Assembly (NCBI GenBank): GCA_964035545.1
Contig: OZ037771.1
Location: 14,073,133-14,137,132 of the forward strand
DNA: 64,000 nt
Origin: Bugula neritina
Taxonomy: Eukaryota > Animalia > Bryozoa
Direction of reading: 5' to 3'
Below the pieces are notes generated by a model. It ran no database searches. It was given only the letters and a program-made list of their open reading frames with translations, and had not been told where the DNA came from. Positions 1 to 47,083 of this stretch are shown here, piece by piece. The position numbers were made by a program, and so were the translations under genes. The first letter of the stretch is position 1; the number at the start of each line of letters is the position of its first letter.

Positions 1-170
1 GTTTGCACTCATACTGATAGTGATACTCATGGTCATACTCATACTGATACATTAACTCATAGTATCAGACATCAGTGATACATATACTTATAGTTATAGT
101 ATACTCATAGACTTACAGTTAGAGTGATAGTGATACTCATACTGAATCTGGTACTCATAATCATACTGAT
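1..170. repeat. Degenerate hexamer low-complexity repeat (ATACTC/ATACTG/ATAGTG)
   Basis: Repeated atactc/atactg/atagtg units are visible directly. Confidence 0.7.
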
Positions 171-3137: not shown

Positions 3138-5157
3138 GGTAACCTTTTACCATTGGCCTAGTTATACTAGGCTGAAATGGATAGAACTTTCCTCAGGATG
3201 TGAGCTTATCCTGATCCTAGTAAGGGTGTCTGCTGAATTAATGAGCATTTGTTTTCAGCTACTCCAAGTAGTGTCAGCCAGTCTACAATCTTGTATAAAA
3301 CTCCAAAGGCTCCAGTTACAACGGAATGACTTTTTTGATGTTTTTCGAAGGCGGGTTTATTCTAGTGCTAAATTCTGATATTTTCCTAACTTTTCGAATT
3401 TTTTTCTTTTACTCTGTAGTTAACAGGGACTGTGATATCAATTATCGTTGTTTCAGCATTATGCTTGTCAACTACTAATATATCGGGTCTCCTAACTTTG
3501 ATGACTACGTCAGTGTGTATGTTAAAATCTTACAAGGTTTTTACATTATCATTTTCCAGTACTGATTCTGCTTGATGGCCGTACCAATTCTTACTTTTCT
3601 GAAACCCACGAAGTTCACACAACTACTATTGAAATTATCAATGCCAAAAGGTTGTGTTTTTTCATATATTCTCCTTCTGCTACCTTCTCAAACTCACTCA
3701 ACACGTGCATCGAAGTTTTGTCTCTTGCGTTACACATTCCACACTTCTTGCTACCCTGTTCTCTCACCATAGCCACTTTATAATTTCTAGTAGTGAATAG
3801 TTGATCTTGCGCAGCTGTCAGCAGTCCTTCTGTTTCCTTTTTCAGCCAACCATACTTCAACCAGTTCCAGGAAAATGCTTTCATGTCTTCCACCATTTTG
3901 ATGATGTATTGACCACGTGAAGCTTTTCTTTACACTCATCAGTTCTTTCTATCACTTTATCATTATTTAGTTCTACTGCCGTTTTGTCTTTTAGGAAGGT
4001 ATTCAGTGTGGTGTTTCTATCAGTCTATGTTTTATTTATGTAGTCTGACATGCTGCAGTTTTCAATCTTTATGCATTTTTCAGTTGACAACATTCTTCTA
4101 CCGCCTTCCCTTCTGCTAAAATACAGCCTGCCTACATCTGCTCTCGGATAGGGTGCACGGTTTGTTGTCATTAGCTTCCTTGTCTTTCAGTCCATATTTT
4201 TTAGCTCATGAAACAGTTCAGTCAAGTATTCTAGCTGTGTAATGCACTGCTGTTACTGCCCATGTGTTTATTGCTTTGATTGTGTTCTCACCATTCAGTT
4301 TTGAATCCAGAACTTTTCTTATTTGTTTGTAGTACTCCTTGATCTTATTTTTCATTTCATATATTAATTTTGTATTCTATCAATCTCAAGAACTACTAGA
4401 TATTTATACGGCTTCTCACCCAGATCTTTGATTACCTGTTCATCAGGCAAACTGATTCCTGTGTCCTTGATTTTCTTTCCCTTTCTCATAACCAGTGTGG
4501 CACATTTTTTAATCCAAATTTCATTTCTATATTCCTTGTGAAGATCCCGGCAGTGTTTACCAAAGCTTCCAGTTCTGACTTTGATTTCCTATTTACCTTC
4601 AGGTCATCCACATATAGGAGATGGTTTGTTTTCTGTCTCGTCGAAATTTGCATCATTGAGCCGCTTCTGTCATGCGAATCGGTAGTTGGAGAAAAGGGAT
4701 AGAGATAAAGAGTTTCCTTGGAAAATTCTTAGTTTGATCTTAATTTTTCCTATCTTTTCTTCCAGGTATTTCAGTTATGTTTTCATGGTTTCATGCTTTT
4801 TCTTATCAACCTTATGACATTAATTGCTATTCCAGTTGTTTGCATCGTTTCTAAGATCTAATTTCCTTGTCTTTACATATGCTCCAATTTGTTGCTAACT
4901 TTATTTAGTCATTCTGCATTGGTATTATTTTTAGTTGGCTGACCCCATATATTTTATCAGAATGCTTTTGATTTTTTTGTCAGGTGCCTCTTTAGATGTA
5001 CATTCATTTCCTCGTAATTCTTGATAAAAGCGCTTATCATTGTAAACATTGTGTTCTGATTATATTGATCAACTCATTCTGTATATCTGTTTATCTTCTG
5101 GCTTACAGCTCTCAGGTTTTGCTTCAGTTTTTCAATCACTACACCACACTCTTTGTT
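3138..5157 (-). mobile_element. R4/Dong-like non-LTR retrotransposon, copy A, 3' portion (RT, zinc knuckle, restriction-like endonuclease); decayed
   Basis: Minus-strand motifs NHLLYVDDLK (~4600-4627), YKYL and LNGENTIKAINTWAV. Also KKETEGLLTAAQDQ..CxxC..H and RPDI. Many stops and frameshifts. Colinear with 40330-42343. Confidence 0.9.
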
Positions 5158-6070
5158 CCCAACTAACAAGAAACGTTTATACAACCTTTGGATGTGTTGT
5201 CAGAAGGTTTTGTTCACAACATTAGAATCAAACATTTCCGTTTAACGTTATGGTAATGTTTGATAAATGTTTAAAGTCAACATTTTAGTCAAACATTTAA
5301 CAAATGTTGAGAAAAGTTGTTGTATAAATGTATATCACAACGTTCATTAAATGTTTGACCCAAACATTGTAACAAAACATCCATTAAACGTTGATAGAAT
5401 GTTTCAAAGCAACGTTTGTTCTAAACATGAAATTAACGTTATAACCCAACGTTTAATAAATGTATTTTCCAAAGGTTTATTAAGTGTTTGAAAAAAAGGT
5501 TGTATTAATGTTGTTTTCAAAACATTCTATCAACTGTGTCAACAAACTGTTTCAATAAAACATTAATACAACGTTTATACAACATTTCAATACAACGTTT
5601 CTTTCAAACGTAACCACAATGTTTTAATTCAACGTTCAATAAATGATTTTTACCAAGGTTAATAGAATGTTTGATAAAAAGGTTGGATCAATGTTTTTTC
5701 AAAATGTTTTATAAATGTTTTAACCAAATGGTTTTACTAAACATTTATACAACATTCATAGAACATTTCAAACAACGTTGTTCTGCAAACATAAACATAA
5801 CGTTTTAACCCAATGTTAAAGAAACGCTTGATACCAATGTTGTTCAAATGTTTGATAAAATGGTTGCATGAATGTATTTTGAAATGTTGTATAAACCTTT
5901 TTTCAAAAAGGTTTTCAAAAAACATCAATAAAACGTTACTTCAACATTTCAATGCAACGTTTTTTCTCCAATATGAAGTTAATGTTATAAAACAACGTTA
6001 CTAAAACAGTTTCTCAGTAAGGTTACTAAAATGTTTTAAAAAAATGTTTCATCAATGTATATTATAAACA
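5158..6070. repeat. Left subterminal AACGTT/AACATT/AATGTT array of the giant element
   Basis: Dozens of aacgtt-like palindromic cores at ~11-12 bp spacing. Confidence 0.85.
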
Positions 6071-9000
6071 TTGTATAATCTATTTTTACACAACTCAAAT
6101 ATTCAGTTTTGTAGTTGGAGTTGCGGACTCTCTCTATTTCTACAACTATGCTTATAATTATTTTATAGTGTTATATAAAGTTTGATGTAAAGCAAGAACT
6201 TTTGTAATTATAAACAATAATTTATTAGAGCAAAGAAGAAAATATCTAAAGTGTTTCCTAATAAAAGATTGAAATTGAAGGGCAACTTTTTACTGGTTAT
6301 GGCAAGTTATTTTTATTGATAATTGATGACAATATAATGAAGAAATTTGACCTGTTGAGTAGGAAAACTTAAGCTAAAAAAACATAAACAGTGTATTTAT
6401 GAAAAAATTAAATAACAAGTTTATTGGGTGATCATGAGTTTAATTATAGTGGGTTGCATAAAAGCTAGCGTCAAAAGCTAGCTAATAGCTTGCTTGACAG
6501 CTATATATAGTGATTAAAACAAAACTTTAATAATTTACAAAATGTGCTTGCTGCACTTTAAAAAATAACGCTGATGTTAAATTATGCCTTAGTTACCGGA
6601 GTAGTATTGCGCAATCTATCTTAAGTAAAAATTCGCTTGATTGGATGAAGTTTTTAAGAGTTGTCTGTTACTGAAAATATGTTTTTGAAAATTCGTTCAG
6701 GTTATATTTTGTTGACTCTTAATATTCAAAATTGAAATTGCACCAGAGTTCTGTAAATAAAATATTGTAATGGACTTGAATGTTATATGTCCGAAATTTA
6801 ATTAAGTCGAAGTGTAACATAAGGCGTTATTGTGAAATATTTTCCCTTCAATTTTGCCTTCCAATGCAACTAGGATAATGTATATTGGAAATATAACTCC
6901 TTATTAAGTTATAATTAGGTTTTTACGTGTGCATGTGTGCATGTGTGCACATGGTTCGTGCATGCGTTGACATTTTTGCCTGTTTTGGTGTAGATAGAAT
7001 TAAAGACAATTCCATTTTGAAATTTATTGTGGGAAACTAAGTTGTATTTTCATATCAATTCAAGTCCAATGCTGCCACTTGAGAAATTTTTAAAAAGTAA
7101 ACAGATTTTTTTTAAAATGCAACTATATACATAATAGATACTAGGCATAATTAGAGACAGCTTTTTTCTTATGGTAACTTTTAGTCAGCAAATAAACTGG
7201 AAATGCTTATTAAAAGCATGCAAATGCCTTTCCTACTCAACATGAGATTTTCTTTCAAAATTATAAAACAGCGTTAACTGGAATCAATCGATATATATAG
7301 CTCTGTTAGACGGCATCAATAATTAGGCCATCAGTTGTAAAATATGATTATCTACATCTATTTTATTTAACTAACAGTCAAACTTCAACTTGTTTATTAT
7401 TTTATACAAACTCGATGGTCATTTAACTACCTTGCACTATACCTTGCTATTTTGAAGGTTCAATTTTACAGTGTATTCAAAGCAATTCTTTTGTTAGCAG
7501 TATAAATATATTATGCTAAATCTGGAACTTCTTTATTATAAACCAAGATGCAATGTCCATTTTGTTGCAAATTTCTGATATCCTCTCTAGTTAGATAAAT
7601 TCTTTTGGCTATAGTTATATAGATAGGCTAAGAGCACTTGCATCGTTTATATCCTTAGTAAAGCTGTAGGGAGCCAGATTTATATGTTTTCATCCGACTT
7701 ATTATAATATTATATAACCTAGGCGTTTCAAGCAATGCAATATAGGATGTTAAACCAATTAAAATAATACAATCTTTTAAGAGGTATCCTTTCATTTGCT
7801 GCATTTACACAGGAAATATGTGAGCTGGTTTAGAATTTACAAACTTGTAGTATAAATTTCATATTTATAATCAGATTTTGCAATGCAGGTTTTTTAAACT
7901 CTATACATCTGCACTGCAGAATACACCGGTGCACTGCTTTTCTTTTAAACTCTGAATGAATAAAATTTATATCCTCCAACACATGTGCCAGCCCTTCATC
8001 TGTAATGAAAACTCATCCTGAACTTTTTGCCAGTTGTATAAAGTCAATCAAAATTGTATACCTCAAACAAGATCCAAACAGATTTGCCGACATATAAAAT
8101 TAAAATTCACTAAAAACACATTATAGTGTCTATAATCTTTTTATGCTCTCGATTTTAACCTTTATAATAAGATTTTATCTTAACTTCAAAACATGTTTAT
8201 TTTTAACAATATTGGCCTATAAACTCTGAAGAACATGTAATTTCAATACTCCAAAATATTACTTTTCAAAACATTGAAGACACCCTGAGATTCTACTGCC
8301 TTAGAACCTTTTTGACTTTTAGTCGTAACTTTTGTAGATTATAAATATTATCGATTGATTATATATACTGTCATCGCAGATATAGATGGTTCCCATTTAT
8401 TATAGATGCTAAGCTAAATTTCCTACTTGAATGTATCTTACATGGACACTATTTGTTTATTTCTGTACAATAATATATATTCTATATTTATTTGAATAAT
8501 ATTAAAATATATCATAGTTAAATAAAGTTGGATCAATTGTTTGTTATATCCAGTACATGAATAAATTTCTGTGATCTGTATTGATTTTAATTTGATTTAA
8601 TTTAATTGCATTTAATAATTTTGCATATTCTCTACTTCTTGTTGATTGAAAAATAATGTGTTAATAGGTATTCATTAAAATAATGTTTATTATTAACATA
8701 TTACTGTTTTTGCCATGAGCAATTCTGTGAAATGTGAACTATTATTCCAGATACTTAGATAATTAGCTATTATAGCTATTATAGCATAGATCAGCTATAT
8801 TTTAGCAATCAATCTACAGTTATATAGCTATATATATATATATATATACATTATAAAGGTACCAAATTGAAGAATAGGTTTAACAGCTGGAAATAGTCTG
8901 CAACTAGACACGAGTTTTCCTTATAAACACCAGAAGACAATAAATTTCTATTCAGTGTTGAAAGCGCATGCACCAGAATAAAGATTAGAAGCTTTCCTAC

Positions 9001-12000
9001 CAATGAAAAGGAGATAAATCTAGTATATAATCATCTATAGCTCTAAATGAACCAGAGCTAATTGACATCATTACTATATTCTATTACACTAGAAGTAATT
9101 AACTTCATAAAAAGTTTTTGCATGAGACAATAGATATGGATAACTATACTGAAGTTAATAGATATATTATACTAGCTTACATATCTAACTGAGCTATTTA
9201 TAGCAATAGTGCAGTGTGAATTGTGTGAATACTACTACAGTGTTCAGTAGTAACAGAGTAAACTATTATAAGTCTCATTTGCTGGCATACTTTGATTATA
9301 TTTATAATATGCTGTGCATAATACCAGTATTTCAAACAAATTTCACAACTACTCAGATACTATTTGACAGAATAGATATTTCCTATGTTTTGTCATAGAC
9401 CGGTAAAAATAACTACTTCTTGCTGTAGGCCACTTTAAAAGACTAGCTACTATATATTAGTTTTATGTTGATTGACCATTGTAATTTTAATTTATCTGAG
9501 CAACTGAAAGCCCAAATTTAATAGTTATTTATTAATATTTTGCTGATAAGTTCTATTTCTAGTACATTAGCATGGAACCTATTGGCTGGCAACGTGGATA
9601 GGCTATAATTTGTTTTAAGGGTGACTAGTCAATATTCAATAAAATAAAACTGTTATAAAGTATTTTATTGAAATATTTTGTCTACCAGCCAAAATGCTTT
9701 GACAGTTGTACCCTGAACTATTTAAAGAGTACAATGCTAAATGGTGGGAACCAAGTACTTTACTTCTAAACTGTAGGATAAATAGAGCAAGCTACAAAAT
9801 AAAATATTTTAATAGTTTCAGTTGTTGCCTTTCTAGTTATATTTTAATGAACTAACTATTGTATTGGAAACAAGCACAGCTTTTACGCAGATGGTCACAA
9901 CTGTTATTAGAGCATAGCCACTTTATAATTGATATTTTCTTGTGAAACGTGTAAAACATCTAAAGAGCTTTTGTGAAAATAATCTTAGACTACAAATTTA
10001 AAGCAAGAAATACGCCATTTATGATGTAAAAGTGATTTCTACGTTTTGATTAAATCTGTTTGGTTGACTAAAAGTTCTAGGTTTCTAAACAAGGATGGTC
10101 AGCACTAGCATTTGCAATATATTTTTATGTCTCTTGGCATATTTTTTAAAAACCCCAAGGAAATATATTATCAATTTATGAAGTATGAAGTGTTATGTTT
10201 TTTAAATAAAAACACTTTGCAACTTGTAAGTTAAAATTTTTATGAAGTGCTTATTCTTATTCTTTATACTATAGTAGTTGAAGCTTGTGAAGTAATATTT
10301 CCTTTGACATCCTTTTTTCTCAGAGCAACATTAAAAACCTTCAATTTGCCTATACAGGGACAAACAACTTTAGAAGTAAATAACACTCTTAGAAAGATGG
10401 GTTTTGGGTTCATAAAAGCTACAAATGCTTATGTTTACTTTCACCAGCCAACTACTAATTTCAAGAAAAAATACCTTTGTTTGCAGTGCTTTAATAACAA
10501 CACCTGTATCATGTTCCCCAGATGGGGTGATAGGCAAATACTGGTCTGTAACATACCATACACAAAGTTAATATACATGAATGACATTTATCCATTGTAC
10601 ATTTTACTTTTAGGTTTTACAAATAAAAATATATTACATCGAATTTTCTCAACAAATCAGTTTTTACATAAACTAGTGAATTTATCTCACATTGCCTATA
10701 TTTTCACCAACTGATAGATAAAATTTGAACAATAGCGGTTAGAACAAACCCATCATATAGATGCACTGAGCATGGAAAACGGTTTCATCCCAGTTAGTCG
10801 ATTTTTTATTTTGGTACGATATATATAACAATATACAAATATAACTGTTGCCTTTACTGCTGAAGATTAAATAAACTACCAAGCCAGCTATTTGCTTTAA
10901 CTCAAAACTAGTTTAGCTACAGTTTATTTTAGTCAGAATAACAGAGTAAAATGCACGAATGCTTTCATGGTATATCGCATACTGCTATATTGCAAATTTT
11001 TCTTATTATATTTTGTCTGTCTTTTACCTTTAAGTTTAAGGTTTGTGCAAGATGGCTTCTTATAGAAGCATTGTTACTGTAAATGGCTTGCTGGTGGCTT
11101 CTTGCTTTCTATTATGTGCTAAATAATAGTATAAAATACATATATTACGCTATAATTTACATATATGGTAAAAGTGGGAACCATTTAAGTAGAATGACAC
11201 CGCTGGTATATCTCACCATAATAACTTAAATAAATTTTTTCAAGTTCAAGTGCGCATTGCATGTTTCTAAAAATATTTGTAGCAAATTTTGCATATATTG
11301 AGCATAGAATTTATTAATACTTTAAAATTTAATTGTGGCCATGCTGTTGAAAATTATGCGTTTGAAAATATTCCTCAAGGCTTGCTGGGCTGCTTATAGC
11401 TGCAGCTGTTGCTGGTACAACGGACAATACATTCTGTCCTTGTTATTATAGCAACAATGAGTTATTAAATTTAGCATTTGGGTGATTATGTAAAATTTTG
11501 GAACGTAGTATGAAACTAATGAATTAGTTAGCTGGCATATAATGGGTTTGTTTACAGTTGAGCTATTATTTAGAATTAGTAACACAAATTCTGAGTGAAA
11601 TATTCTAAGTTTTGTTCTTTGCTATAAGAAATTGTATCTACAATGTTTAGGAAAGCCCCCTGTGATAACTCCATGTAACAGATAAAGTGTCTGACAGAAA
11701 TGGCACAGGTACATGCATGAGCAATATTGGCACAATTATTAATGGTAAGGTAATAATGACAAATTAAAGAGTAGGTAAGATGTAACAGTGATGCTAAATA
11801 TTTCCAAACCCCCAACTACCCACCGTTACCTGCAGTGTTGGTACTAATTAATTTAGTCTTACCAGTTTGAATAAAGTCTATGTTTCAATGCAAGAACCTA
11901 GGTCTTAGACCAGCAAGATGTATTTCAAACTATAATTAAGAATAGATGGCAAGGTGAGCTGAAAGTTTTACACGCAGTCTTTAGTAAAAATTATTGGTAT

Positions 12001-12503
12001 AATAGTTTGTTGTACCCTTTATTATTAGAATTAGAAAATACAATTAGCCAGTAAACACTATACTGCAATTAAGTATTAGACGCTAAGGCAGTTCACAAAG
12101 ATACTACTTTAAGTTAAAATTTTATTGGTTGGGATAGCACTGAGTTTTAGCAAAATAATCTTTACAGGGTGATTTTTACCTATGCTTCCTAATGTACAAA
12201 ACATTTTTCAGAATAGTTTCTGCAACTACATTAAAGTGCAAGTTTGGTAAATATTGTAGAGCTGCTAATAATTCCTAATGACAGCCCAGGAAGCATCTTT
12301 ATTTAAACAAGCGCATATACTACCAACTAGAATCCAGTTGGTGGGTTAGCTTGTTGGAATAGCTTACTTTAAGGTTGTACATTCAACACATAAGTTCGTG
12401 AATTGAACATCACCATTATCTAAATACCAAATAAATGTTTCATTCATGCTGTAACAATAAAGCAACATGTATTGTGAGTTGATGCCCAGGTTAAAGATGG
12501 CAC

Positions 12504-12794
12504 GATTTTGTAAAATTGACAAAAGCAAAAATGCAAAGGTAATAATAGCACAAGCAACAATGGCACACTTTCAATATTATGGTTTGAGGTAGGGGGTCGG
12601 GTTTAGAATAGAAGTTTGATTTTAGGGTTGGATTCAAGGGTTGGCGACTTGAGTTTCAGGTGGGTGGTTTAAATTTGGGGTTTGAGAAAGTTTTGCATCA
12701 GTTTGCTATTTTTACCTAACTTTCCATTTGTGCCATATCACCTGTGCCATTTTTACCTGTGCCTTTTTTATCTGTGCCATTTTTATTTGAAATC
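12504..12794. mobile_element. Degenerate foldback/MULE-like MITE
   Basis: aatggcaca-like repeats at the left, inverted tgtgccatt repeats at the right, and a G-rich ggttt/tagggtt centre. A further relic lies at ~21080-21135. Confidence 0.5.
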
Positions 12795-12882
12795 ATTGCG
12801 AGTGATTGGCTAAAAGAACATATATATGCACTAAAATTCAGTAGTAGAAAATATGTCTTGTCTCATCATGTGACAGATTGGT

Positions 12883-15865
12883 AATGGACCATGTAAAACT
12901 CAGCCAATCAGCAAAATGTACCAGGTCAATACCCCACCATTATAACTTGAATAAAATTCTGCAAGTTCTGTTGCAAAATGCATGCCTCTTTATTTCATTT
13001 TTTAAATTTATGACAATGTGATGCATTTTTCAAAACATCTAAACTAAGTGTTTATAAAATGCAATTAAAAATTGTATGTCTGCAAAAATAACCTGGTACA
13101 ATTTTGCAGCTTGAGACAAGTTGTTACATAACTCTTACCCCCTGTTCACACCATACTCCGAAACAGCAGAAACAAAATGGCAACGCTGTTACATTTTTTC
13201 AATGGGTGTTCACACATTGACCCAAAGTACAATGCATGAGGCTGAGTTGTGACCAATCATAATGAGGTTAATTCTTGTCCGCCGCGACTTGAACGCCTTC
13301 GGATATTATTTACAAATTATTCGCAACACTCTTTTCAAAAGATGTTATGTAAATGCTATTTACTAAATAAAAGCAATTAAATAAAAAGAATCTCTATTCC
13401 TTTCTAAAATAATTGTGCAAACTTATTTAAATAATGAATATTTAAGCCGTCCAAATCAATTTTAAGTTTTTTGTTTGTGTGCTTTTTTGATTAGGGAAAG
13501 CTAGATTTTTAAGCTAAGTTTAATTCAAACAAGCCAGATAAAGGATTTTGTAATTTTTTACATTTTTGAATTAGTTAAATTAAATTAAAAGTAAGCAATT
13601 AAAATAAACTGGCGAAATTTTTTTTTAAATTTTAGTACCAATGGGAGCCCGCTGTGAGTTTTTTAATCAAGCACTGCTTGATTGACGCTGCAGGTATAAC
13701 GTGGTACAATTCAGCCTAGATGTTAACAAAGATGGCTAAATATTTGTTCTCTATTATACTAGTATGAATGACTATTGTTCCCCAATGTGCCGGCTAGTAA
13801 TGAGCCACCATATTTTGGTACAGAACTCTGATTAGCTGGGTTTTTGAATGGTTTTCTAATACATACATCTGAATGCCTGAATAGTGTACACTCTGTCTAC
13901 ATTTAAGAGGTGCAAGCTACAGGGTAGTATTATACCAACTTTCTGTTTACCAATTTTTTGTTCACAATAGTAAATAGGCTATTCAGCAAGGATCTTATGG
14001 CATGTAAGCCATGGGAACTATCAACCCTATCTGCTGTATATATTTTAGCTTGTAATAGCAAGTCTAGATCATAGTGTTACTACCAATATTCTCATATAAA
14101 CTTATTCAATTTTTTTCAGATAATAAAATCCGTTCTTCGCTCATAGAAAATAACTAGCAATTATTCAATGATTTAGCTTTGGTAAACTAACATGTACAGT
14201 TTTCAAATGCATTTCTTTTAGACGACCCTATTCTTCAGCTTACCAATACCATAATTTACAGCTTATGCTAAGTCTGAGTTGGCTGTTTCTGAATCTAAAA
14301 TACTGTTTGTCTCCTATATTTGGACAATAGCTTAAACTAGTCATTATATTTACTTGCAGGATTTAAAATGCACAGTTTAGCACTAATAATATAAGTTTTT
14401 TTCCAATGAATTATAAACACACAAATTATTGGTGTAGAGAAATTGCAATTTATGCTGCTTATGATAACATAATGTTTTTACATGACCTAATCTCATAGCT
14501 TTAAAATGTTGTAAAATTTTCTTTATGAAAGTACTGGACTTCATCAGTTATCGAGGGTGGCTGCAGATTGCAGAGATCCCAGCAGACAATAGGACTTTCA
14601 AGAAATGCTAGCTGAAGGCTTTACCCAATACTTTACCATTCAATCAGAATGTAATGGGTGTGAACATACATTACGTAATTTTGTAACTAGGCGTAGTAAT
14701 CTGGCTGTACAAGACAAGGCTTTGAATAAGTTCATGAATTTAAGCAAATACTTCTGACAAACAACTATTGTTTTACTTAGTAGCTGGTTTAAACCCATGT
14801 AACTATAACAACATTAATTTTAATGAATTTTGTGTTTGAGTGAAGTTAGCAACTGGTATAAAACCATTCTAACTTTAAACACTGAAGTATTATCAGGCAA
14901 TAACTAGTGATGAGGTGGTCACTTTTGATAGGGCTTAAAATGACTAAGAAAAATAAAAAAAATAAAACTAATTTACTCCTTCTAAAAAAATTGTAACCAA
15001 AAAAGTTTATTCTTTACTGAGTAAAGGATTGTCGCACATTGAATTATAACCTTAACTAAATAAGTCAAGACAGCAAGTGAACTACTTTAGGTGATAGATG
15101 AATACTGTATATAAAACATCTTTTCTAAATATGTAAACTGCTAACCCCTACAAATAAATAATAAATACATACAGATGGTTTGATTACTAATTTTTTATGA
15201 AATAATTTCAAAGTTTAGGGGAAAGAACCATAAAGGGACAGGTGCATAAACGATATTAGCAGCAGTGATGGTTGATTGAACCCCTTTAGTAGTTCCCATG
15301 GCTTACATGCCATAAGATCCTTGCTGAATAGCCTATTTACCATTGTGAACAAAAGATTGGTAAACAGAAAGTTGGTATAATACTACCCTGTAGCTTGCAC
15401 TACTTAAATGTAGACGGAGTGTACAATATTCAGGCATTCAGGTGTATGCATTAGAAGACCATTCAAAAACTCAGACAATCAAAGTTCTGTACCAAAATCT
15501 GGTGGCTCATTATCAGCTAGCATATAGGGGAACAATAATCATTCATACTAGTATAATAGAGAACAAATAAAACTAAGAGTTATGTAACAACTGGTCTTAA
15601 GCTGCAGAATTGTACCAGGTCATTTTGTAGACAAACAGTTTTTAATTGCATTTTATACACACTTAATTTAGATGTTTTGAAAAATACATCAGAGTGTCAT
15701 AAATTTAAGATATGAAATAAAGTAATGCACTTAAAAAAGTTGCACAACTACTTATTCTAGAAGCATGCATTTTGCAAATAAACTTGCAGAATTTTATATA
15801 AGCTATATTAGTGGGGTATTGAGCTGGTACACTTTGCTGATTGGTTGAGTTTTACATGGTCTATT
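12883..15865. repeat. Long inverted repeat (arms 12883-14020 and 15290-15865)
   Basis: 15290-15570 is the reverse complement of 13741-14020, and 15575-15865 is the reverse complement of 12883-13137. The spacer is ~1.27 kb. Confidence 0.9.
13138..13740. mobile_element. ~600 bp insertion in the left arm of the inverted repeat, probable truncated PIF/Harbinger-like MITE
   Basis: Absent from the right arm. Begins after TTA with CCCCCTGTTCACACC, a Harbinger-like end. The second TIR was not found. Confidence 0.45.
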
Positions 15866-16341
15866 GGTGGTCAATATTTCAAATTAGTCCCTTTGCTTCT
15901 AACTGAGGTAAACTAATAAACTAAAACATTTATTATTTTTGTTGTGTAGGAGTCTATGTATTGCATAGTAAATAGTCAAAAATTAAAGAGACATTTTTAC
16001 TGGGACAGGATTTTGATAGTGCCTTATTTCTATGTTCAAGATCTTAGTTTTTGCTTACTGCTCAGGACATGCTATATAAGCTATATAACTTGGCTTTAAA
16101 TGCAGAATCGCAATAATTTCAGTCTATTTGCATGCAATCATGATGGCGAGAACAGTTAGTATAGTATAGTCATAAAGAGCTGCGATAGCAGTGATAATGA
16201 ATGTTGGCCTCCTGTTTTATAGCATAATTGTAAAATGTGGTGTAATGTTGTTTGCTGTTGGTGCTTCTTAGACAAATATTTTTAGATAAATGAACCTTCG
16301 GAGCTATGGGCCTTCGAAATAACCATACGTCCTGCGGGCCT
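15866..16341. mobile_element. Old relic of the foldback family seen at 52480-53943
   Basis: The reverse complement of 16290-16341 (gtaactagtcagtaatccaaaggccc...cgaaggcccatag) matches the terminal motif ggtgactagtcaatattccgaaggccc. A weak left end lies at 15866. Confidence 0.45.
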
Positions 16342-17872
16342 TTGGATTACTGACTAGTTACAATGCAAGTCTTGAAATACAATTTGTTAGTTTATGTAAC
16401 AGAACTGAATATCTTGCAACACAGCTACAGGGAACTGCTCACTTCAAAATATACTGTATTAAATATTTTCTTAGTTTACATATTTGACTATGAGTTTACT
16501 CTACACAGTGTAGTCAAAGACCTGTAACCTATCATATTTTACTATCATATTAAAAAGTGAAACAAACTTGTAAAACTTTCTATTTATTGGGATTTCAGCT
16601 GGTTTCAAAAGCTACGTAGGCCATATTAATATTTCAGCTTATATATTTTATACAACCAAATGTTTGCAGGAACCTGGTATATGTTTATCAATGAGTAGTA
16701 AACAAGGAGTTTAATGTTTATTCAAATGAAACACTATTACATAATAATATTGTAGGAACCTACTTAAATTTTAAGACTACATAGGAATAATGCATCAAAG
16801 CATAATATTTATAAGAATAATTTACTTAAGATTGAAACAAATATATAGCAGTAACCATTGAAGTATAGTTTAAGTTCAGTGGCAGTAACTTATAGCTGTT
16901 GTTAGTTCCAGTAAAATAAAAGAGCAATGTTTAATAATACTATACTAAGAATATAAACACCAAGAATATATATGCATATTTTGCCAATTGGGTATATAAT
17001 ATGCTTTACTTTCCAAGACTACTGGCTTTGGCTGAAACAGTTAAGCTACTATGTACTTGTATAACAATCTTCAGTGAGGCAGCTAAGCAGCTTGTAGATA
17101 ACCAGTTTATAGTAGCAAAAAATAAGTATAGCAATTAGCTATTTATAATCATGTTTAACTTTAGACCTAGACTTTGAAGGAAATCTGCACTCTCTATTTG
17201 TTAATTCTAGACAGCACTCTATTCTAAATAAAGAAAATATTTTAGGTTGACATATAAATAGTTATATATAGTCAGATAACCCCAAATCCCAAACCTGACT
17301 AAGGCATCTTGAAAGCCAATCAGTTAAGCAGTTTTAATAGTTACTCCAGCCTTAAATGCAAATGCAGCTAGTTCATTCAGGAATGACTTTAGGCACAACA
17401 ATTCGAGCAATGAGCTATGGACGGTTATGGAGATACAAATTTAGAAACTAACAAACTTTACAAACGTATAAAAGCCGATAAATCATAGTTTTCTCTATAA
17501 GCTAGCATTTTTATATAGCATTGTATTTGTGAGCCTTACATGAAAAGGTATAATCCATGTGATAATCATATGCTAGTCTAACGGCAGTACTGTATATTTT
17601 GTCAAACACAGTTTTAAATGTATATTCATAATTTTAGTTGTACAATATATACCATTAAATTACAAATATATTATTCGAGGGAGAATCTTTCAGGAGATTC
17701 ATTGATATATTAAGACTGGTCTAATAATCAGAGAGTACTTTTAAAAATGCTGGTATTGTAAAGTTTTCATGCAAATCAACCCTGTTACTGAACCCAACCA
17801 ATGCTATATAATCCCTAATAACAATTCAGACATTATTCCTCTCAATTATTAGCAAATTTACGTATAATTCAT

Positions 17873-18250
17873 TTAACCTTTTACCCTTTCAGAGTAATTG
17901 CGTTTCATTCCACAGGGCTGCATTATCACAAGACTGCCAAATAGCCAACCCTTCTAAGTTATAAAAACAGTGAATGTGTACTGCCGGTTAGTATTCTGGT
18001 TTTGAATTAAGAGTTATTAGCTGGCTTTGTAGCCTTCTGTTTATTCAGATTTAAGTTCTACAGTGATCTATAAACTACAGAGGTGCATTTTTTAACGTAG
18101 CTTGTATAAATCTTGGAGCAATTTGGCCTCAAACTAAAACTTTAACTTGGTATTGTTTGTACAGTTACTGGGTGTACCCGCTCAATTAACCTGTGTATAG
18201 AACAGTTTAAAAAGACGTAATGCATTTATCTGTGATCTGGAAAGGGTTAG
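17873..18250. mobile_element. Possible degenerate piggyBac-like MITE
   Basis: Ends ttaacctttt..accctttcaga and tctggaaagggttag resemble TTAA-CCC..GGG-TTAA termini. Confidence 0.3.
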
Positions 18251-19147
18251 GATGTAAATTCAAACAAGTAAATTTAAATGACTCCATAATAAAATCGGTT
18301 ACACAGCTATTTTTAGATGCATGCAATTTTCAATTGAAATTTCGGAATTTTTGTATGGTGAGATATTGAGATGGTAAAAAGATTTCCACTTTCTATTGAA
18401 AATAGTTAGGCTGTTGTTGTATATTTTGATATAATTAAAATAAACTGTAACTTTATAAACAAGCCAATCATTAAAAATCAGGTTTCAATTTTATCTCAAA
18501 AGTTGCCAACAAGTTGGAATAATTAGTTCATTAAATCAGTTTGACTCACTATTGGAGTGATTCCCATACTGTGTGTGCATTAAAATTTCTGTAAAACCAA
18601 TAGTTATCAACATATTTAATGTATGCCCATTAAGTAATATTTGGTTTAAGCTGCTGGCAAAATTCACGCATCAACTTAGTAACATCTGTGCTTGCAATGT
18701 TAGAATGGAATATATACAAGGTTATTTTGCCAGCATATAAAATTTTTGCCTAAGTTTGATGCAAAATACTTAAGTTTCAAAACTTTAGGCATTTGGTAAT
18801 TTGCAATATTTGTTAAATATATTTTTAATTGGCAACATGTTTTCTAAATTTCTTCGAATAATCAGCACATAACCATGACTTTGCACCATGCACTTATTCT
18901 TTTTGAAAATGTGGTTCTATCTGAAACTTGCTCATAGCTTAGGCCTTAGTGTATACAACTACAAATTTTACTGGCTATAAATTATAAGCTAGGTTTAAAA
19001 TGGGTATATGAACAAAGAAATTATTTCAATGCACAATTGTACTCTTAAGAAGTTACTTAGGTGCACAAATAAAGCAGCTGTAGCATAAAAGAAATAGCTT
19101 TCACTGAAAAGATTACATTCAACAAGCCATTGTTTGTGGCTATACAG

Positions 19148-22100
19148 AGCATTGTCGGCTTTTACTGCAAACTAATACAATTTCTAAAGTAACTGGTTGT
19201 AGAAAGACTTTCAAAGTGCCCCTCTACAGGGCTTTATCTAAAACTCTGAAAAACATGGAGATTCGCCAAAATACAGGTTAGACCACTAAACATATATTTG
19301 ATATCACTTACAAATGTAATAAGTTATCAGAAGCAACTTAATAGAAAATTATAATAATAATGAAGAATTATATATACTCAAGTTTATCTTTTGACTATTA
19401 CTATGATCAGTGAGACTATGGTAACTAGTTATAAGTTAAACTTTAATTTATCATCCTAGTACTACTAGTACTACTATAGGAGGTGTAACTTAAAGTTAGA
19501 TTAGTACAACTATATATAAATATATTTAATTTTATTATCTTAGTAGGAATAAGTAGCTTTTAATTTAAAGCTAGAGGACTGCATTTTCCATGTTGAACTT
19601 AATTTTAAACGTTTAAACTCTTTAGAGTTAATAATGTGAGTTGTCCTCTCGGACTGACCGCGCTAGTTGCGGCCATGTTGAATTACTCTGCCATTTCAAA
19701 AATTGTTATTGTAATTGTTCAGCGAAGGAGTGTAGTTTGCCTTAATATTATTTTTCTGTCTTGCCACTTAGTAGAATAGTTGTATCGCTATATTTATTCA
19801 GTATTATTAGTAGGTAGTTGTTTCTTTTTGTACATTAATACTCTAGTTATCTTTAGTCTCTCTAATTTGTAGCTTTTCAGTTTATTTGCCTACCAGCAAA
19901 GTGTTGCTGGTAGGGGGGGGGGGGGGCTACTAGTTTAGTAGTCAGAGTGTACTGCTTGGCTTGGCTCGTGTGGGGCAAGTCAAGGTGGCACTTGGTGTGA
20001 CGCAAGGGTGGTAAGAGGTCACGGAGGCAGCTCGGAGCTGCCATCTATGATAATTGCAAATATTTTTAAACTTATGCTTTAAATGAATGTAATGTCAAGT
20101 TATTGCAATCTAATGTAGGCTATATAATCCTACAATAATTTTTAAAAGCAACTTATTTGCAAAATTTGTTTTTCATTCAGAAAAAAGTTTGATTTAATTA
20201 GACTTTATACTTTATAGTCTATGTTAATTTCAATATATATATTATTATTGTATTATTTGTAAGTCCACAAACGTTTTTTTTTCAGATAATCCTCTTCACT
20301 ACTCTCGTTATATTGATTACTCTGATATAGAAAAGCAATTTGACTCTGAAGTTGGAGAGAAAGATGCTAAGTAAACGCTATAAAGTGCTAATTCTATTCA
20401 TTACGCAAGTATTTTATATAACATGGAATCAACGTAGCACAAATAAAATGCACATGATGATGCATTTTTATTGATTTTTTAAATATACATGCATTTTGCA
20501 TCTCTTTTATAGGCTATATTTAGGTACAGGTTCTTTTTAAAAGATTGTTGCTTTTTGTTAGATAAAATGTCTGTTGCAGTCTATTTCATTTAAATGTGTA
20601 TATTATTTGTAGGCAAACAAATATCAATTTTCTTCAGGCTCTTATCACACCTCTGACTACTTGAAGCTAATAAAAAATATCTAGGCTCGGTATCAACTAA
20701 AACTGCATGGGCTGATAGATAAGATTTCAGCAATTTCCAAGTATTTGGGAAGAAGGTAATTTATAATAGTACAAACTATGTCCATATTGTAAATTTGTGT
20801 AATGCACAAGTTTCACCATGTTTGATTAAATAGTGAGCACAACTCTCAATAATATTATTGTAATGTTGGTGAAGCTACGTACAATGCTTAGATTGCTTGC
20901 AGTTTATAAATATTTATTATGATTACAGTTTTTTAAATTTAAAAACTATTGAAAAATAGTACTTTGCTTTTTTCTCATAGATTATTGTAAAATAATTTTC
21001 GAGTTGATTGAAAATTTTACATGTTTAAATTGATCATCAAGGCACTTTATTACTGTAATATTTCATTTTTCCATTAAATTACTTGTGCCATTATTATTAG
21101 TTATTACCTATGCCCTTTTAGCCTGTGCCAGTTTCATTAGACAGAGTGCATGATTACCTATTTTGAATTGAAGTTTCCTACCTTCTTCGCAACATTTGTG
21201 CTGGTCATCATTACAGTAAAATTTACAATAAATTTTGGTTGCCTACTTACTTTTTAAAATCGCCTTAAATAACAACTTTGTTATAGTCTTTGATTTAATC
21301 AAATGTTATGTATACTAATTCGTTATTTGAACATACATACTAAATAAAGGCAATCTTTCATGCTTTTATCTAGATATGCAGGTTGCACCTTTTCTTTGAC
21401 AATGCAATTCTGTTTAATTGAACAAAAATCATCAAGTTATGGCATAGTGGTTAGTAGATCATACATAAATTAAAAGTTTCGTACCCACTTTATAAAGCTT
21501 TATTGGATAAATAACTCCAAATTACTGCTAATTCTTTCTAGAATAATTCAGATTATACTTCATATTGTGTTTATTATAAAACAAGCAGTATGTGCGTGTA
21601 GATTATATCCGTTCATGCATGAATGTCACGACACAGTGATTAATTAATACATGCAATCAGCATAGTTGTGAACAAATTAATAGTTATTAGATAATTTTAG
21701 AAAAAAAAACTTGAATTTGAATTCGGCGCAATTTATTTAACTCTGTGTGTATAATTGCTATTTATTTTTTATTTACTGAAATATTAAATTTGCGACTTGG
21801 AGCCAAAGTCACTGATAAAATTTAAAGAAGGTTAATTAAAATGACAGTATAACCTACATCAAATTGAAATTGTTTAATCATCTCCATAAATTTTATTCCT
21901 CAAATTATTCCAAGTTGCTGATTTTGCTCCAAGCAAGTAGTTTATATAATATAGAAATTTTATAGCTCTAATACTGTACACATGCATAATTAATGTTTTC
22001 ATGAACATAGTTATGCATTTTGCACCTAACTCCTTCAACCTATATCATTATAGTTTTTTCCAAAATATTCCTTTTTTGCCAGAAACTAGTTTGTTAAAAT

Positions 22101-22297
22101 CTATTTTAATTATTAGTTTAATCTGTGCATATTTTATTATTTGTAGGCTAAAAATAATAATTTCCCTTGAGCCATTCTCACACCTGTGATTACTTGATAA
22201 GAAAATTACCCAGGCTGTGCATCAAGAAGAACCAATCTATACCTTGCTTACATTGAATGTTAGGAGTTCAGCTATTTCCATGTACTTGGCTATTCGG
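19148..22297 (+). pseudogene. Decayed multi-exon gene cargo inside the giant element (exons ~19148-19276, 20286-20370, 20613-20755, 22147-22297), product unknown
   Basis: AG/GT-bounded segments. The first two are open and phase-compatible (HCRLLLQTNTISKVTGCRKTFKVPLYRALSKTLKNMEIRQNT-DNPLHYSRYIDYSDIEKQFDSEVGEKDA). The later two contain stops. Confidence 0.4.
19635..20052. mobile_element. GC-richer insert, possible solo LTR
   Basis: Starts TGT, is ~420 bp long and GC-rich against its flanks, with a poly-G tract and AATAAA on the minus strand. No TSD confirmed. Confidence 0.25.
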
Positions 22298-22619
22298 GTA
22301 AATTTATGGTCATACCAATGAAGTTATCTGTAATTTACACACTGTATATGAGGGAATGCACAGGTGCCACTATGTGAACTTATTGATAGGTTGGTGAGCA
22401 CAACTCTGATTATTTGAAGCTTGTAATGTTTGAAAGGAGTATTTAATATATCACCTCTTGCCTTATAATATTGACCAAACTTTTCAAAAAGTTTATAGTT
22501 TCAGTTTATAAATAAAAATAAATAAGTTATGCACTGATAATATTATATACAAAGTTAGGTCATTATATCAATAATTGTTTGAAAAGTGTAATATTTAGCA
22601 GTTTAAAGTAAGTTATTGG

Positions 22620-23830
22620 AATTGAACTGGAAGTTGCTTACCCATTTCCCCATTTTCTTGTTGGTCATTTTTATAGTAAAATGTGCATGAATTAGAAGTT
22701 GCCCACCTATTTTCACAAGTTTCCAATTATTAGTCATCTTTATAAAACAGTATGTATGAAGGTGAGGTCGCCCACCTATGATCAGACATTATTGTTAATA
22801 ATCATTATAGCAAAATGTAGGTGAAGTTGCCTACCTATGTTCCAACTGTTTTGTTAGTCATCTTTTTAGTAAAACTAGCATAAAGTCAAGCTTGCACACC
22901 CAATTCCAAACACTATTATCAGTCATTTTTATAGTTAAATGTACACAAAATTTATATTAAATTGAAGGTACCCACAATCTCTGAACAATCTTTTTTATAT
23001 TTATAGTGAAATGTAAAATAATTAAAAATACCGACCAATATCTGAACAGTCTCGTTTGCCATCATGACAGTGAAATATACATAAAGTTAAAGTTGCTCAC
23101 CTATATTAAAAACATTCTTGCTAGTCATGTTTATAGTGAATTGTACATTAAATTGAAGCTACCCACCAATATCTAAACAGTCTTGCTTGCCATTTTTATA
23201 GTGAAATATACATAAAATTGAAGTTGTCCACCAATTTCTGAACACCCTTATTTGCCATCTGAATAGTGAAATGTACATAAACTTGAAGTTGCCCACCCAT
23301 TTTCTAATTTTATTGCTTGTCATCTATGGAAAATGTTCATAAACTTGAAGTTGCTCACCCATTTTCCAATGTTCTGTTAGTCATTTTCATAGTAATATGT
23401 AGATGAAATTGAAGTTGCCCACCCATTTAACTTTTTTGCTAGTTTATAGTGAAATGTAAATACAATTGAAGTTGGCCAATCAATTACCAACTTTCTTGTT
23501 TGTCATATTATTATTTTATGGTGAAATGTACATAAAATTGAAGTTGTCCACCCATTTTCCAACAATTTCTTATTAGTCATTTTCATAATAAAATCTAGGT
23601 AAAATTGAAGTTGCCCGCCCATTTTAAGAACTGTCTTGTTTGCGATCTTTATGGCAAAACTTACATAAACTTGAAGTTGTCACCTATTTCTGATCACCCT
23701 TGTTTTGTCATTTTATAGGGAAATGCACATAAGGTCGAAGTTGCCTACCCATTTAGGAACATATCAAATTTTTTGTCATCTTTATAGAAAAATGTACAAA
23801 AATTTGAATTTGCCCATCCATTTTCACAAC
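22620..23830. repeat. Minisatellite, ~20 diverged copies of a ~59 bp unit
   Basis: Recurrent gaagttgcccaccc...ttgttagtcattt..atagtgaaatgtacataaa at ~59-60 bp period. Confidence 0.9.
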
Positions 23831-24599
23831 ATATTCTTAAACACGACTTCATTTTACCACAGTTTATACATACATTTACATTGAATGTTTTTTGTTTCTA
23901 GTCAGTATTCTTGTTGCTTTGTAGGTGGTCACCATCTTACTGTAAAGAGCAGCAAGACTTTGAAGCTTTAAATATATATTTTGAGGAAAAGAATGAGCAG
24001 ACTGAATTCACAGTCTCCAGAAGCCTAATCTGTAACATTCAGTTGGACCTTAATTTTAGATGAAGCTTAATAATTAGAAAGCTAAAATAACTTTAAATCT
24101 CCAAAGCGTAAATAAAGCTCATTGCTAATGTTCAGCTTTGGATATAAAGGAATTAACGTTCTAAAATGATAATTTGTATTATTCCGTTTACTTGCTTATA
24201 TGCAGAAATGTTTTCTTTGTTGACTTTACTAAATAGCTATGTTTTGAATCAACATTTGTAAATTAGCTTTACTTTTTTGGCTGCTTAAATTTTTTGCGTA
24301 TTTCTTATGACCTGTTGCTATCTATAATTTTGCATTAGCTTCAATATGAATTTATTTATCTACTTATTAGCCACATTTTTTTATATGTAATTTATTTTAG
24401 CTCATTTAAATTGACAAATAAGTCTTTATATTAGGTTGCACATGTTTTTTAGTAACAATTATTGTTTGTAATTATTGCTCTTCACTTTTAAACAATAAAG
24501 TTATCAATACACAATATAAAACTTCCACTTGTATATATTATACTGCTATATATACTTTCATATAGCAATGGTTATGTAAACCTTGCCAAATAATTATAA

Positions 24600-25094
24600 T
24601 AACCTAAATTTGCAATGCTGCATAGAGTTTATACAGCATTATAATAGCATTTATGAAAAGTTGTTTATAGAGCGTTTTAGATAAAAAAGCTAAATAACGT
24701 CTACATTTCAACATCTAGATAACGCTTGCTTTGCAACATTATAAAAACGTTGCTGAAGCAATGTTATGGCAACGTTTGTATGACTTGTTTATAAAACGTT
24801 GGTAAAATGGTTTGCAGAAAACGTTGTTGCCTAAACGTTGTGTGAGACAAAGAGATACATTTAAATTTAAACATTTACGCAATGTTGGATCGCAACCTTT
24901 CACCAACGTTGTATGAAAAACATCTACACAACGTTATGCAACGCAACGTTTATGAAAGGTTGGTAAAACGTTTTGCGATAAACGTTTGTTTCAAACGTTG
25001 TATATAGTACAAAAATGTGTCGACATTTAAACATTTAATAAACGTTTTTTCCAACGTTTATACAACGTCATATCAATGTAAATTGTTAGTGGGG
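24600..25094. repeat. Right subterminal AACGTT array of the giant element
   Basis: Dense aacgtt repeats ending in TTGTTAGTGGGG. Confidence 0.85.
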
Positions 25095-26002
25095 TTCTTT
25101 ATCCTATATTTTTCTTCAACCATTCTTCTCAATGAATCATTGTAAGCTCTACTTTTTCACTCTGCTATTTTACTTAAGTCTGATCTAATTTCTTTTTATT
25201 TCTTCTGCAGTCGTATTTTCCATACTTGTACATTGTCAGTTTTTCTTTTTCCTTTTTGTTACACACTTGTTCTGTTACTATTTTTCGCACAAGCCATGGT
25301 GGTGTTATTAAGCTCAATGGTATTAATAATCTCAACACAGTTTAGCACATCATTAATCTGTTTTACTGCCTGTAGTAATTTGACCCTCTCAATGTGCCTA
25401 AGGGCTCTTAGTGTTGGTCGATCATTAGATAGTTTGTTATGCTCATTTATAATTTTTCTACTAACACTTTTTCTACCTCTGAACTAGGTACTCTTAAAAT
25501 TCTCATGGCTGATTTATATGCTATCTCATGTTGTACTATAACATCCTCTATTTGCAAATTTAGCTCTTCATTATCTTCTTCACCAATTGATGTGCCTAGT
25601 TCTTGCAAGGTTCCTTCTTCAATCTTATGGAGTTCTTCTTCCATAAAATGCTTGTGTTTCTTCATAGTTCTTGCTTAATCCGCCAGTCTCTATTCGCTGA
25701 TGTTAAACTCTCCTCTGTTTTCCAGCGTTTGCACATTCTTTTTAAATAATTCTTTGATCCGGGTCTACAGAGCTCATACATTGTTTTTCTATAACCTCTC
25801 AATTTGGGTGTACTTTTGAAGTAGCATTCCATGACAACTTTGTTGTCTTCTCTTGAGTATCTTCTTCTAGTTGTGCCAGTAACGGGTTGACGGCCGTAGG
25901 TTGCCTGGCCCTCCACATACCCACTGCCAGACGGGACATGCCATGTTTAGTTAGACATACCATTAACGTCGTTGGCTTTATTAGTTCTATTTTAATGGAT
26001 CA
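25095..26002 (-). mobile_element. R4/Dong-like retrotransposon copy A, 5' portion
   Basis: Resumes exactly where 5157 stops relative to copy B. N-terminal RRRYSREDNKVVMECY..P..RGYRK motif. Abuts an (ATT)n tract. Confidence 0.85.
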
Positions 26003-28092
26003 TATTATTATTTTTAATTATTATTATTATCACTATCAGTAGCAAAAAAATAATTTTATATTTGTTATTAGTTACTACTTATAGAAATTGAGTGCCACAG
26101 CTTGAGGGTTATAAAGTCAGTCTTAGTCAGTGTAATGGGGATGCTGATACTGACATTTGGCTTTGAGCTCATACTTAAATTGCTAACAACTATACCTAAG
26201 GATAACAGGAGTATTAAAATGTTAATTTATAAGAATTATAACCTTAGAGTGGAGATATTATTCTCAATTTATTTAGTTTTTACTTTACTAACTTTTATTT
26301 TATTCATCAACCTTACTGTCTATTTAAATAGCAAACTAAAGAATAATTATGAAGGCCTTTGAATTGAAGTACTTTTCTGTAGCTGATTAGATTTCAAGTA
26401 TTAAAATAACATACTAAGACAGAATACCATTATATGAGCTAGATTAATAAAGTAAAGAAGATTTCTTTGTTAATCAAAATATAGGTGTCACATATGCCTA
26501 TTTTTAAGATTATGTTCTTATATGTGCTGTCTTTTTAATATTTTTAAAGTGCTACATTTTGAGGGTAGCCTACATCAATATGACTGCCCTGTAATTGCTT
26601 GTCAACTATAAGAGTTAGACCTATAAACTGTCTCATTTTCAAATTATCTTTACTTTTCTAATTGATGTTAACATGACTATTCCTATTAGTATTTTGGTGT
26701 TTACCATTAGTAATGTTTGAACTAACATCAATATCATTGTTAATTTGTCTAATTATTCAAATTTTAATATTCATCATTTGTGAACAGTAAAAAAAATTTT
26801 GTCTTTCTTAAATTAATGTGATGCTAGATTAGCTACTCTAGCAAGTGTGTATTGTGCAATGAGTACTAATGCCATATTTTTGCACTTCTTGTTCTATATA
26901 ATTTAGATTTAAGGTAACAATTCCTAAAGCTATCACATAATGCTGCTATCAGTTATAAAGATGTCACTGATCCAAACATTGAAAACCAGCTGAGTGCATG
27001 CAAGGTTGAAAACTTATTTTCTCTGGTTAGGTAAGTAGAAAGGTATTTGCTGTAATTTACAACTATTTTGTTTTCAACATCCTTGATGTTCATCTCTAAA
27101 AGATAAGTAGCACATAATGGTACCTGCTTTACTTAGCAGAAGAAATTATTGTCAAAGCTCTATTACTACATTTTAAATTGTATGACACTCTTTTGACTAC
27201 ATTCGATTTCATATCTCAAATAATTATATTTCTGACTCATGAAACTGTAACCACACACTTGAGAACAAAATAAATAATGATATGGAAGCTTTCTTTACCT
27301 TTGTCAATTTAGTCAACAGCCAATGACTGAAAACATGTTTTGTACACTATTGATTGCCTCTCTATTTCCGCTATAAGGCAGAAACTTTAATCTCAAAATT
27401 TAAGACACTGGCAATTCTTCCCAATAATACGTTGTTCAAAACAAATATTTTTTGCCAAGTAATATAGTATTTAATTATATTTTTTAGTCAAAGAAATTTG
27501 TTTGGTTTCTTGTGTCATCTTGAATAGCTTGTTATTCATTATCTTTTTCTTCGTGTTATGACTATGAGTGTATATAACCTTTGCTGACAGGTTTTTTCCC
27601 CATCACTATATGTTTTCTCTTTTTACTCTCTAACAGTTTTATTTCCGTTCATTTTTAGAGTTTACTAAAATGACATGGGTGTGCTTTGTTGTGGCTCCTA
27701 ATTGAGCGCATCCGTTGAGATTATTGGAAGTTTTGTTGAAACTGAGCTGAGGCCTCTTACTCCTAAAGGCAAGAATTTGAGTCATCTTAGCTACTTGTAG
27801 CATATCAACATCGAACAGCACCATTCCACTACTCTAAGCTTAAGGTTTTGGCTGCATTAGATCAACAGGTAAGTTTAATAGTTTGTATTTCGTACACTAT
27901 TTCATGATGTCTGTTCAGCATTTACTTGGTAGCACACATTTATAGATTTTGCATTCTTTTAGTTTTTTGCAGTACAACTTTTCTACGCAACTATTACACT
28001 GTTGTTGCTGTTAATTGTAGTTTATTCTGCTTGACCATGCAATTATTGAATTATGTTGCAAAGGTGATTGAGTCCTTTTATTTAATTTAGTA

Positions 28093-28442
28093 CACACTGG
28101 AAATCTGCAGTTTTTAGCCATTTTTACAATTTAGCTGCTAATGAACAATGCTTTTTGCTTAAAATTAGTGAGACATCAAGAAATACACCTAAATAATCAA
28201 GGTTCTTCTTAATTTTGCATGATTTCTCATGTTTTTTCCTATTTATTCATTTCATTTGGATTGCCTACTGTTACAAACTAACCGTGGCGATCCCCAGTCA
28301 GAAGTGGCTGTAATTAGAAAAAAGCATAGGAAATCAAAGAAAATTAAAAAGAGCCTTGATTATTTAGGTGTATTTATTGATATTTTTTTAGTTTCGGGCC
28401 AAAACTCATGTTCATTAGCAAAAACTTGAGATCTTCAGTATG
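28093..28442. mobile_element. ~350 bp palindromic MITE flanked by TA
   Basis: TA-CACACTGGAAATCT...AGATCTTCAGTATG-TA ends. Internal inverted arms aaatacacctaaataatcaagg / ccttgattatttaggtgtattt. Confidence 0.7.

Positions 28443-46992: not shown

Positions 46993-46998
<6 letters not shown>

Positions 46999-47080
<82 letters not shown>
46999..47080. repeat. (TA)n microsatellite, ~40 units
   Basis: Seen directly; only ~6 units at the paralogous site 29044-29055. Confidence 0.95.

Positions 47081-47083
<3 letters not shown>

Follow-up and report, generated by a model that had tools for sequence, protein, structure and literature searches.

In Mirage-type transposons, which belong to the CMC (CACTA/Mirage/Chapaev) group, the target-site duplication is 2 bp. 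Transposase binding sites of CACTA and hAT elements are usually laid out as motif arrays next to the ends. A corresponding end-adjacent layout is described for MULE elements (PMC5499845). For CMC elements in general, duplications of 2-4 bp are given (PMC4482050), and for the CMC/Transib clade duplications of 2-5 bp together with termini that are mostly CA...TG (PMC12730594). Cleavage that leaves a hairpin on the flanking DNA is the established route of the hAT, Transib, RAG/V(D)J and MULE enzymes (PMC5499845), and among the clades using this route only CMC/Transib makes duplications of 2-5 bp (PMC12730594, PMC4482050). We analysed a stretch of 64,000 nucleotides from the bryozoan Bugula neritina (contig OZ037771.1, positions 14,073,133 to 14,137,132 of the forward strand; the window), in which a block of 19,937 bp at positions 5158-25094 interrupts a dispersed repeat of about 6 kb. 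This block is almost certainly one copy of a transposon family that makes a 2-bp duplication. As an overall explanation we favour, with good confidence, a young, multi-copy, non-autonomous cut-and-paste family, the excision of which, we infer, would pass through a flank hairpin.

Junctions, empty sites and family copies

The left end of the element, read directly at the junction, is CCCAACTAACAA starting at 5158, and the right end at 25094 is the reverse complement of CCCCACTAACAA. These terminal inverted repeats (5158-5169 on the plus strand and 25083-25094 on the minus strand, the latter from the junction and the comparison of ends) match at 11 of 12 bases, in agreement with the imperfect 12-bp repeat proposed in an earlier, sequence-only reading of this DNA. 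The left repeat recurs unchanged in 14 left ends of the genome. More generally, position 5158 is the start of 14 other left ends and position 25094 the stop of about 25 other right ends.

Two empty sites were available for this insertion. In a self-BLAST of the window, the interrupted copy of the host repeat (copy A, 3139-5157 and 25094-30438) was collinear with a second copy (copy B, 40331-48498), and the difference between the left and right offsets of the alignment equalled the insert size. The uninterrupted 17-mer had a single occurrence in the window, at 42336-42352 within copy B, where 0.02 were expected by chance. The second empty site, which is cleaner, lies in locus L060 (C6:764000-773999), a host-repeat copy 98.6-99.5% identical to copy A on both sides. 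Its sequence is that of the two outer flanks joined directly after removal of one TT, without a single differing base. This fixes the duplication as exactly TT, present at 5156-5157 and 25095-25096, with one TT fewer in both empty sites, and GTT, which the sequence-only reading had kept as an alternative, is excluded. Its proposal that about 19,937 bp entered as one unit is confirmed by ends exact to the base and by the two independent empty sites.

Short repeats are concentrated next to both ends, as had been noted from the sequence. Within 840 bp of the left end and 360 bp of the right end of the element we counted 33 CAAC(G/A)TT motifs, in both orientations: about 20 belong to the left subterminal array (5158-6060), which includes a 181-bp tandem repeat (5387-6058), and 13 to the right one (24734-25094). 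The 64 kb of the window contain 33 AACGTT hexamers, and 26 of these fall in the two end-adjacent regions.

A search of the 216-Mb genome with the first and last 300 bp of the element recovered 15 left ends (94-100% identical) and 15 right ends (96-100%), all stopping exactly at the boundaries equivalent to 5158 and 25094. Pairing of the ends by contig, strand and order produced at least 13 copies of 8.7 to 38 kb, with a size cluster at 18.0-18.9 kb. Besides the window copy itself (C7:14078290-14098226) they are a sister copy discussed below (C9:9719963-9744591), a copy sitting in a TA tract (C9:9558759-9581162), the 38-kb copy (C6:739603-777603), four copies with altered left junctions (C6:6319164-6327910, L005/L040; C8:6090115-6120543, L007/L034; C6:3598476-3619894, L009/L031; C7:2611106-2631327, L008/L052) and five others (C6:3651406-3670323, C1:20925272-20943526, C2:1083454-1101492, C9:3087278-3122507 and C7:11016485-11034739). 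The ends are intact in 12 of the 13 pairs, and all 12 carry a 2-bp duplication of no fixed sequence. In nine it is perfect and lies directly at the ends (TT, AA, TA, AG, GT, AG, AT, GA, AT); in the other three it is accompanied by two extra bases. A 2-bp match has a chance of 1/16 per pair, and in unambiguous cases the flank match never reaches a third base. Paired ends with duplications of their own, which the sequence-only reading had suggested looking for, were found in 12 intact pairs.

The family ends read CCCMACTAACAA and adjoin the CAACGTT arrays. Every copy has the termini CCCAAC...GTGGGG, CAC being found only at positions 4-6 of the right end. A search with the terminus pattern also returned end-like variants, for example with CG at positions 6-7. 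The family was present in several samples, as judged from assembled contigs of public runs.

Two observations concern fragments and flanks on C8. On this contig (L045-L053) the last ~212 bp of the element are found many times, together with one and the same flank, which begins tgat, and beside gag-like open reading frames (ORFs) that have zinc knuckles; this right-end fragment seems to have been incorporated into another repeat unit. The left flank of the L007/L034 copy (L007:1-1500, C8:6088615-6090114) is a repeat of ~271 bp, partly in tandem, with more than 100 matches at 95-99% identity on all large contigs.

The host repeat is dispersed and decayed. Its left part occupies 4506-5157 and its right part, delimited by alignment to copy B and the C6 copy, 25095-30438, both on the minus strand. 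By its motifs it looks retrotransposon-like, but a Pfam search of its pieces gave no match and so no confirmation. Identity between copies A and B shifts exactly at the insertion point, from 93.3% on the left to ~98% on the right. Since copy A and the C6 copy agree at 98.6-99.5% to the left and to the right of this point, the deviating part is the left part of copy B, which may be a mosaic or a gene-conversion product. The C6 copy in turn lies within the 38-kb copy of the transposon family. The two families are thus inserted in each other, indicating that both were active in the same period, recently.

Scars at the left junction

In three copies the left junction consists of the flank, the duplication, the reverse complement of the duplication and then the element, the right junction being normal in all three. 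The sequence is AG+ct in L005/L040 and GG+cc in both L007/L034 and L009/L031. Eight paralogous empty sites of the L007/L034 insertion read GATGA-GGGG-ACAA, and the filled site reads GGG+cc, element, GGG; five paralogous empty sites of L009/L031 give the same base count on the other strand. From these 13 sites the duplication is 2 bp at both GG copies and the cc is extra. The AG+ct junction was matched letter for letter by an assembled contig of public run X1, which may be the sample from which the genome was assembled. In a fourth copy, L008/L052, the first five bases and the left duplication are missing and the right end finishes GGGA; this may be another scar of cleavage at the left end, with loss of bases.

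P nucleotides in V(D)J joints arise when a hairpin is opened off its tip and the end is rejoined. The scars of this family resemble coding-end P nucleotides and V(D)J open-and-shut joints in having two bases, reverse-complementary to the end of the flank, between that flank and an intact end. They differ in being fixed in the germline beside a transposon and in occurring at the left end only.

With moderate confidence we propose that the family was excised through flank-hairpin cleavage. A transposase encoded elsewhere would bind the 12-bp terminal repeats and the CAACGTT arrays at both ends and cut the element out by a double-strand break with the flank end closed as a hairpin, and the element would be inserted at a staggered cut of 2 bp. 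A scar would form where the flank hairpin was nicked two bases away from its tip and the opened flank was joined back to the transposon end from which it had been cut. The junctions suggest abortive excisions, in which the left end may have been cut and the break rejoined to that same end, and the frequency of 3-4 among 13 copies suggests that single-end cleavage followed by rejoining is common in the family.

Interior and coding capacity

A whole-element search showed that the interiors of the other copies are collinear with that of the window element, so that the comparison of interiors proposed in the sequence-only reading revealed a shared backbone. This backbone of ~18 kb is common to the family and includes the 181-bp repeat near the left end and a 65-bp satellite array (22650-23825), which is present in other copies and in an old relative. 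When compared with an 18,255-bp copy (L059 + L058), the arms (element positions 1-7100 and 15900-19937) were ~96-98% identical and the centre 81-90%, and that copy was without three segments of the window element, at 12886-15862, ~15927-16609 and ~19636-20047. In window coordinates, the left arm (5158-12260) is ~96-98% and the right arm (21060-25094) ~95-100% identical to the common subfamily, whereas the centre (12360-21060) is 81-90% identical to most copies and 99-99.7% to the sister copy on C9. The right arm is kept in the old relative, an 8-kb sequence at C1:18986536-18994578 that aligns collinearly with the arms alone (73-78% identity), which identifies the arms as the old core of the family. 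As the arms of the two subfamilies are far more alike than their centres, the sequences suggest that chimeras may have formed when copies recombined or when gap repair switched templates. Outside the family, a search with 4.5 kb of the centre matched only small dispersed repeats.

The sister copy is the sole close match (99%) to the centre of the window copy, with 11 mismatches and one gap over 4,321 bp (99.7% identical). In the 8 kb of it that we examined it shares all three nested inserts; its flanks are different and its duplication is AA. This result indicates that the 20-kb unit with its three inserts transposed at least twice, very recently. The insert at 12886-15862, 2.98 kb in length, is a foldback element: it has long inverted arms and lies between AT dinucleotides in an A-AT-T context, as in ISL2EU. 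The ~0.68-kb segment at 15927-16609, the edges of which are not clean, is absent from the common subfamily and present in the sister, and the insert at 19636-20047 is a small dispersed repeat of ~0.41 kb, likewise shared with the sister, with genomic relatives 72-79% identical. The sister copy later gained a further foldback element of 3.48 kb.

The foldbacks at window 12886-15862 and at L061:202-3684 have inverted arms of up to 885 bp at 96.6% identity, ends reading (A/G)GACCATGTAAAACTC and AT flanks in the A-AT-T context, and the window copy supplies the exact empty site of the L061 element. ISL2EU elements duplicate AT within A-AT-T and have ends that begin GG (PMC4482050). The nested foldback elements fit ISL2EU, and may be a non-autonomous form of that type.

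The window copy has a single ORF longer than 80 aa. Its 61 stop-to-stop frames of at least 50 aa had no match in Pfam, and one stretch of 1.6 kb is without any 50-codon frame. The 18,255-bp copy is just as closed, and so is the old relative. In the conserved blocks that this relative (73-78% identical) shares with the young family, no frame was open in both over more than ~45 codons, and the substitutions showed no third-position bias. An enzyme was also looked for around the family. No transposase-like ORF of 90 aa or more was found in the 1.5-1.8 kb adjoining every end (56 loci), a 10-kb sample of the extra DNA in the 38-kb copy held no transposase and contained the nested host repeat instead, and diverged relatives of the ends (L016, L018, L019, L042, L044, L048) yielded no partner element. 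The element is very probably non-autonomous, and the sequence-only reading agrees with the data in giving it no transposase of its own.

The same reading described a Pack-type element carrying gene fragments, a satellite and miniature elements. The satellite and the nested small elements are real, and the other two parts did not survive: the interior is common to all copies, and the 61 frames gave no sign of captured genes. Pack-MULE and Pack-CACTA elements are likewise large and non-autonomous, with terminal inverted repeats and much internal DNA unrelated to transposase, but here the interior is family-wide rather than copy-specific. The Pack-type assignment is rejected, as the interior consists of the family backbone and nested repeats, with no host gene fragment detected.

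Elsewhere in the window, a 348-aa ORF at 61556-62602 (plus strand) may encode putative NHL-repeat propeller blades.

Alternative explanations and affiliation

One could suppose that the block is not one insertion, either because two unrelated short elements lie at 5158 and 25094 or because copy B suffered a 19.9-kb deletion; the sequence-only reading had itself considered that the two arrays might belong to independent elements. We give this a negligible probability. In the 13 copies the two ends are always paired in one orientation with a collinear interior between them, the 2-bp duplications in the outer flanks match, and these flanks are joined exactly in two independent empty sites, which together rule out both versions. 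The hairpin step is more exposed, and several observations weigh against it, and against other parts of the explanation that we favour. It draws on three junctions only, and the AG+ct junction among them stands without an empty-site control, since its flank is unique and a search for a haplotig or paralog came back empty. Moreover, two of the three extra dinucleotides are CC directly beside the CCC terminus, where slippage of the C run is possible. The extra bases could then come from such slippage, or be two bases of donor flank that came with the left end. Slippage could not produce the CT that follows the AG duplication in the third case, and the C run is invariant in all other copies. Each of the three extra pairs is exactly reverse-complementary to the copy's own duplication; there is no reason for donor bases to match a new target, and slippage does not account for the GG duplication of both CC cases, which is expected at only ~2% of sites at this base composition. 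We therefore regard slippage or donor bases as unlikely, and retain hairpin cleavage as the proposed origin of the scars.

Among the points to be set against our explanation is also the reach of the coding search, which covered frames of at least 50 aa, so that exons shorter than ~50 codons may have escaped it. On this account a transposase gene split by many introns into very short exons could lie within the 18-kb backbone, and the unusual length of the arms (4-7 kb), together with their better conservation relative to the centre, would fit such a gene. The lack of any Pfam match or even of a 50-codon frame over 1.6 kb, the absence of shared open frames and of third-position bias in the blocks kept with the old relative, and the equally closed 18.3-kb copy of the other subfamily make an autonomous element very improbable. 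A non-autonomous element would have its enzyme elsewhere. An autonomous partner with a CMC transposase, anticipated by the sequence-only reading, was looked for by profile scans, by end-adjacent ORFs and among diverged ends, and was not found; whole-genome scans with PF02992 (plant-type CMC) and PF12940 (RAG1 core) were blank, such a blank being no proof of absence. Together with the CCC...GGG termini, which depart from the CA...TG of most CMC families (PMC12730594), these blank scans leave some room for a previously undescribed cut-and-paste lineage whose 2-bp duplication and end arrays are convergent with those of CMC/Mirage. We hold this to be a doubtful alternative, as, among described groups, non-specific duplications of 2 bp are known from CMC alone (2-4 bp for CMC; PMC4482050) and the P-nucleotide-like scars fit the chemistry of the CMC/Transib clade.

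For the affiliation with CMC/Mirage we see about an even chance. The duplication falls within the 2-4 bp of CMC, being 2 bp in 12 of 12 intact pairs and controlled by two empty sites for the window copy and by 13 for two others, and arrays of short repeats in both orientations lie near both ends. Of the known groups, the Mirage-like (2-bp) branch of the CMC/Transib clade fits best, and the duplication and the arrays would assign the family to it. It shares with Mirage-type elements the unfixed 2-bp duplication, short terminal inverted repeats, dense end repeats in both orientations and the occurrence of large non-autonomous derivatives, and with the Transib/RAG side of the clade the proposed flank-hairpin cleavage. 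It is unlike CMC elements in its termini, which are neither CA...TG nor CACTA, in having no linked transposase, and in its wholly non-coding 18-kb backbone with conserved arms of 4-7 kb. The CMC/EnSpm label of the sequence-only reading holds, then, for the 2-bp duplication and the end arrays, both of which point to the Mirage branch, and does not hold for the termini, nor is it backed by a transposase.

Other superfamilies were compared in the same way and rejected. ISL2EU, of the PHIS superfamily, also makes a 2-bp duplication, but the duplications found here are TT, AA, TA, AG, GT, GA, GG and AT, with AT in only 2 of 12, and the ends begin CCC. For Tc1/mariner and pogo, TA was present in only 1 of 12 duplications. 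PiggyBac has a TTAA target, CCC...GGG ends and seamless excision; the ends of the present family do begin CCC, but none of its insertions is at TTAA and the duplication is 2 bp. The duplications of hAT (5-8 bp) and MULE (8-10 bp) elements are likewise incompatible with the 2 bp observed throughout.

The element represents a new family of a known kind, unusual in its size without genes. For annotation of the genome it provides a base-exact and recently active family with defined ends, a duplication rule, a backbone and two subfamilies. The idea that it carries genes is corrected, and there is no exon shuffling to be sought in it; what it illustrates is that a whole non-coding stretch of 20 kb is movable as one unit. 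The scars allow a cleavage mechanism to be proposed for an element with no known enzyme, and would limit the range in which to look for one to the RAG/Transib/CMC side of the DDE transposases. More tentatively, the family may belong to a Mirage-like or undescribed lineage, with its 2-bp duplication and CCC...GGG ends, whose left-end scars would be genomic evidence of a RAG/Transib-like flank hairpin. If so, the hairpin mechanism would extend to a branch for which there is no biochemistry, and the genome would supply natural substrates for it in the form of ends, arrays, and scarred and unscarred sites.

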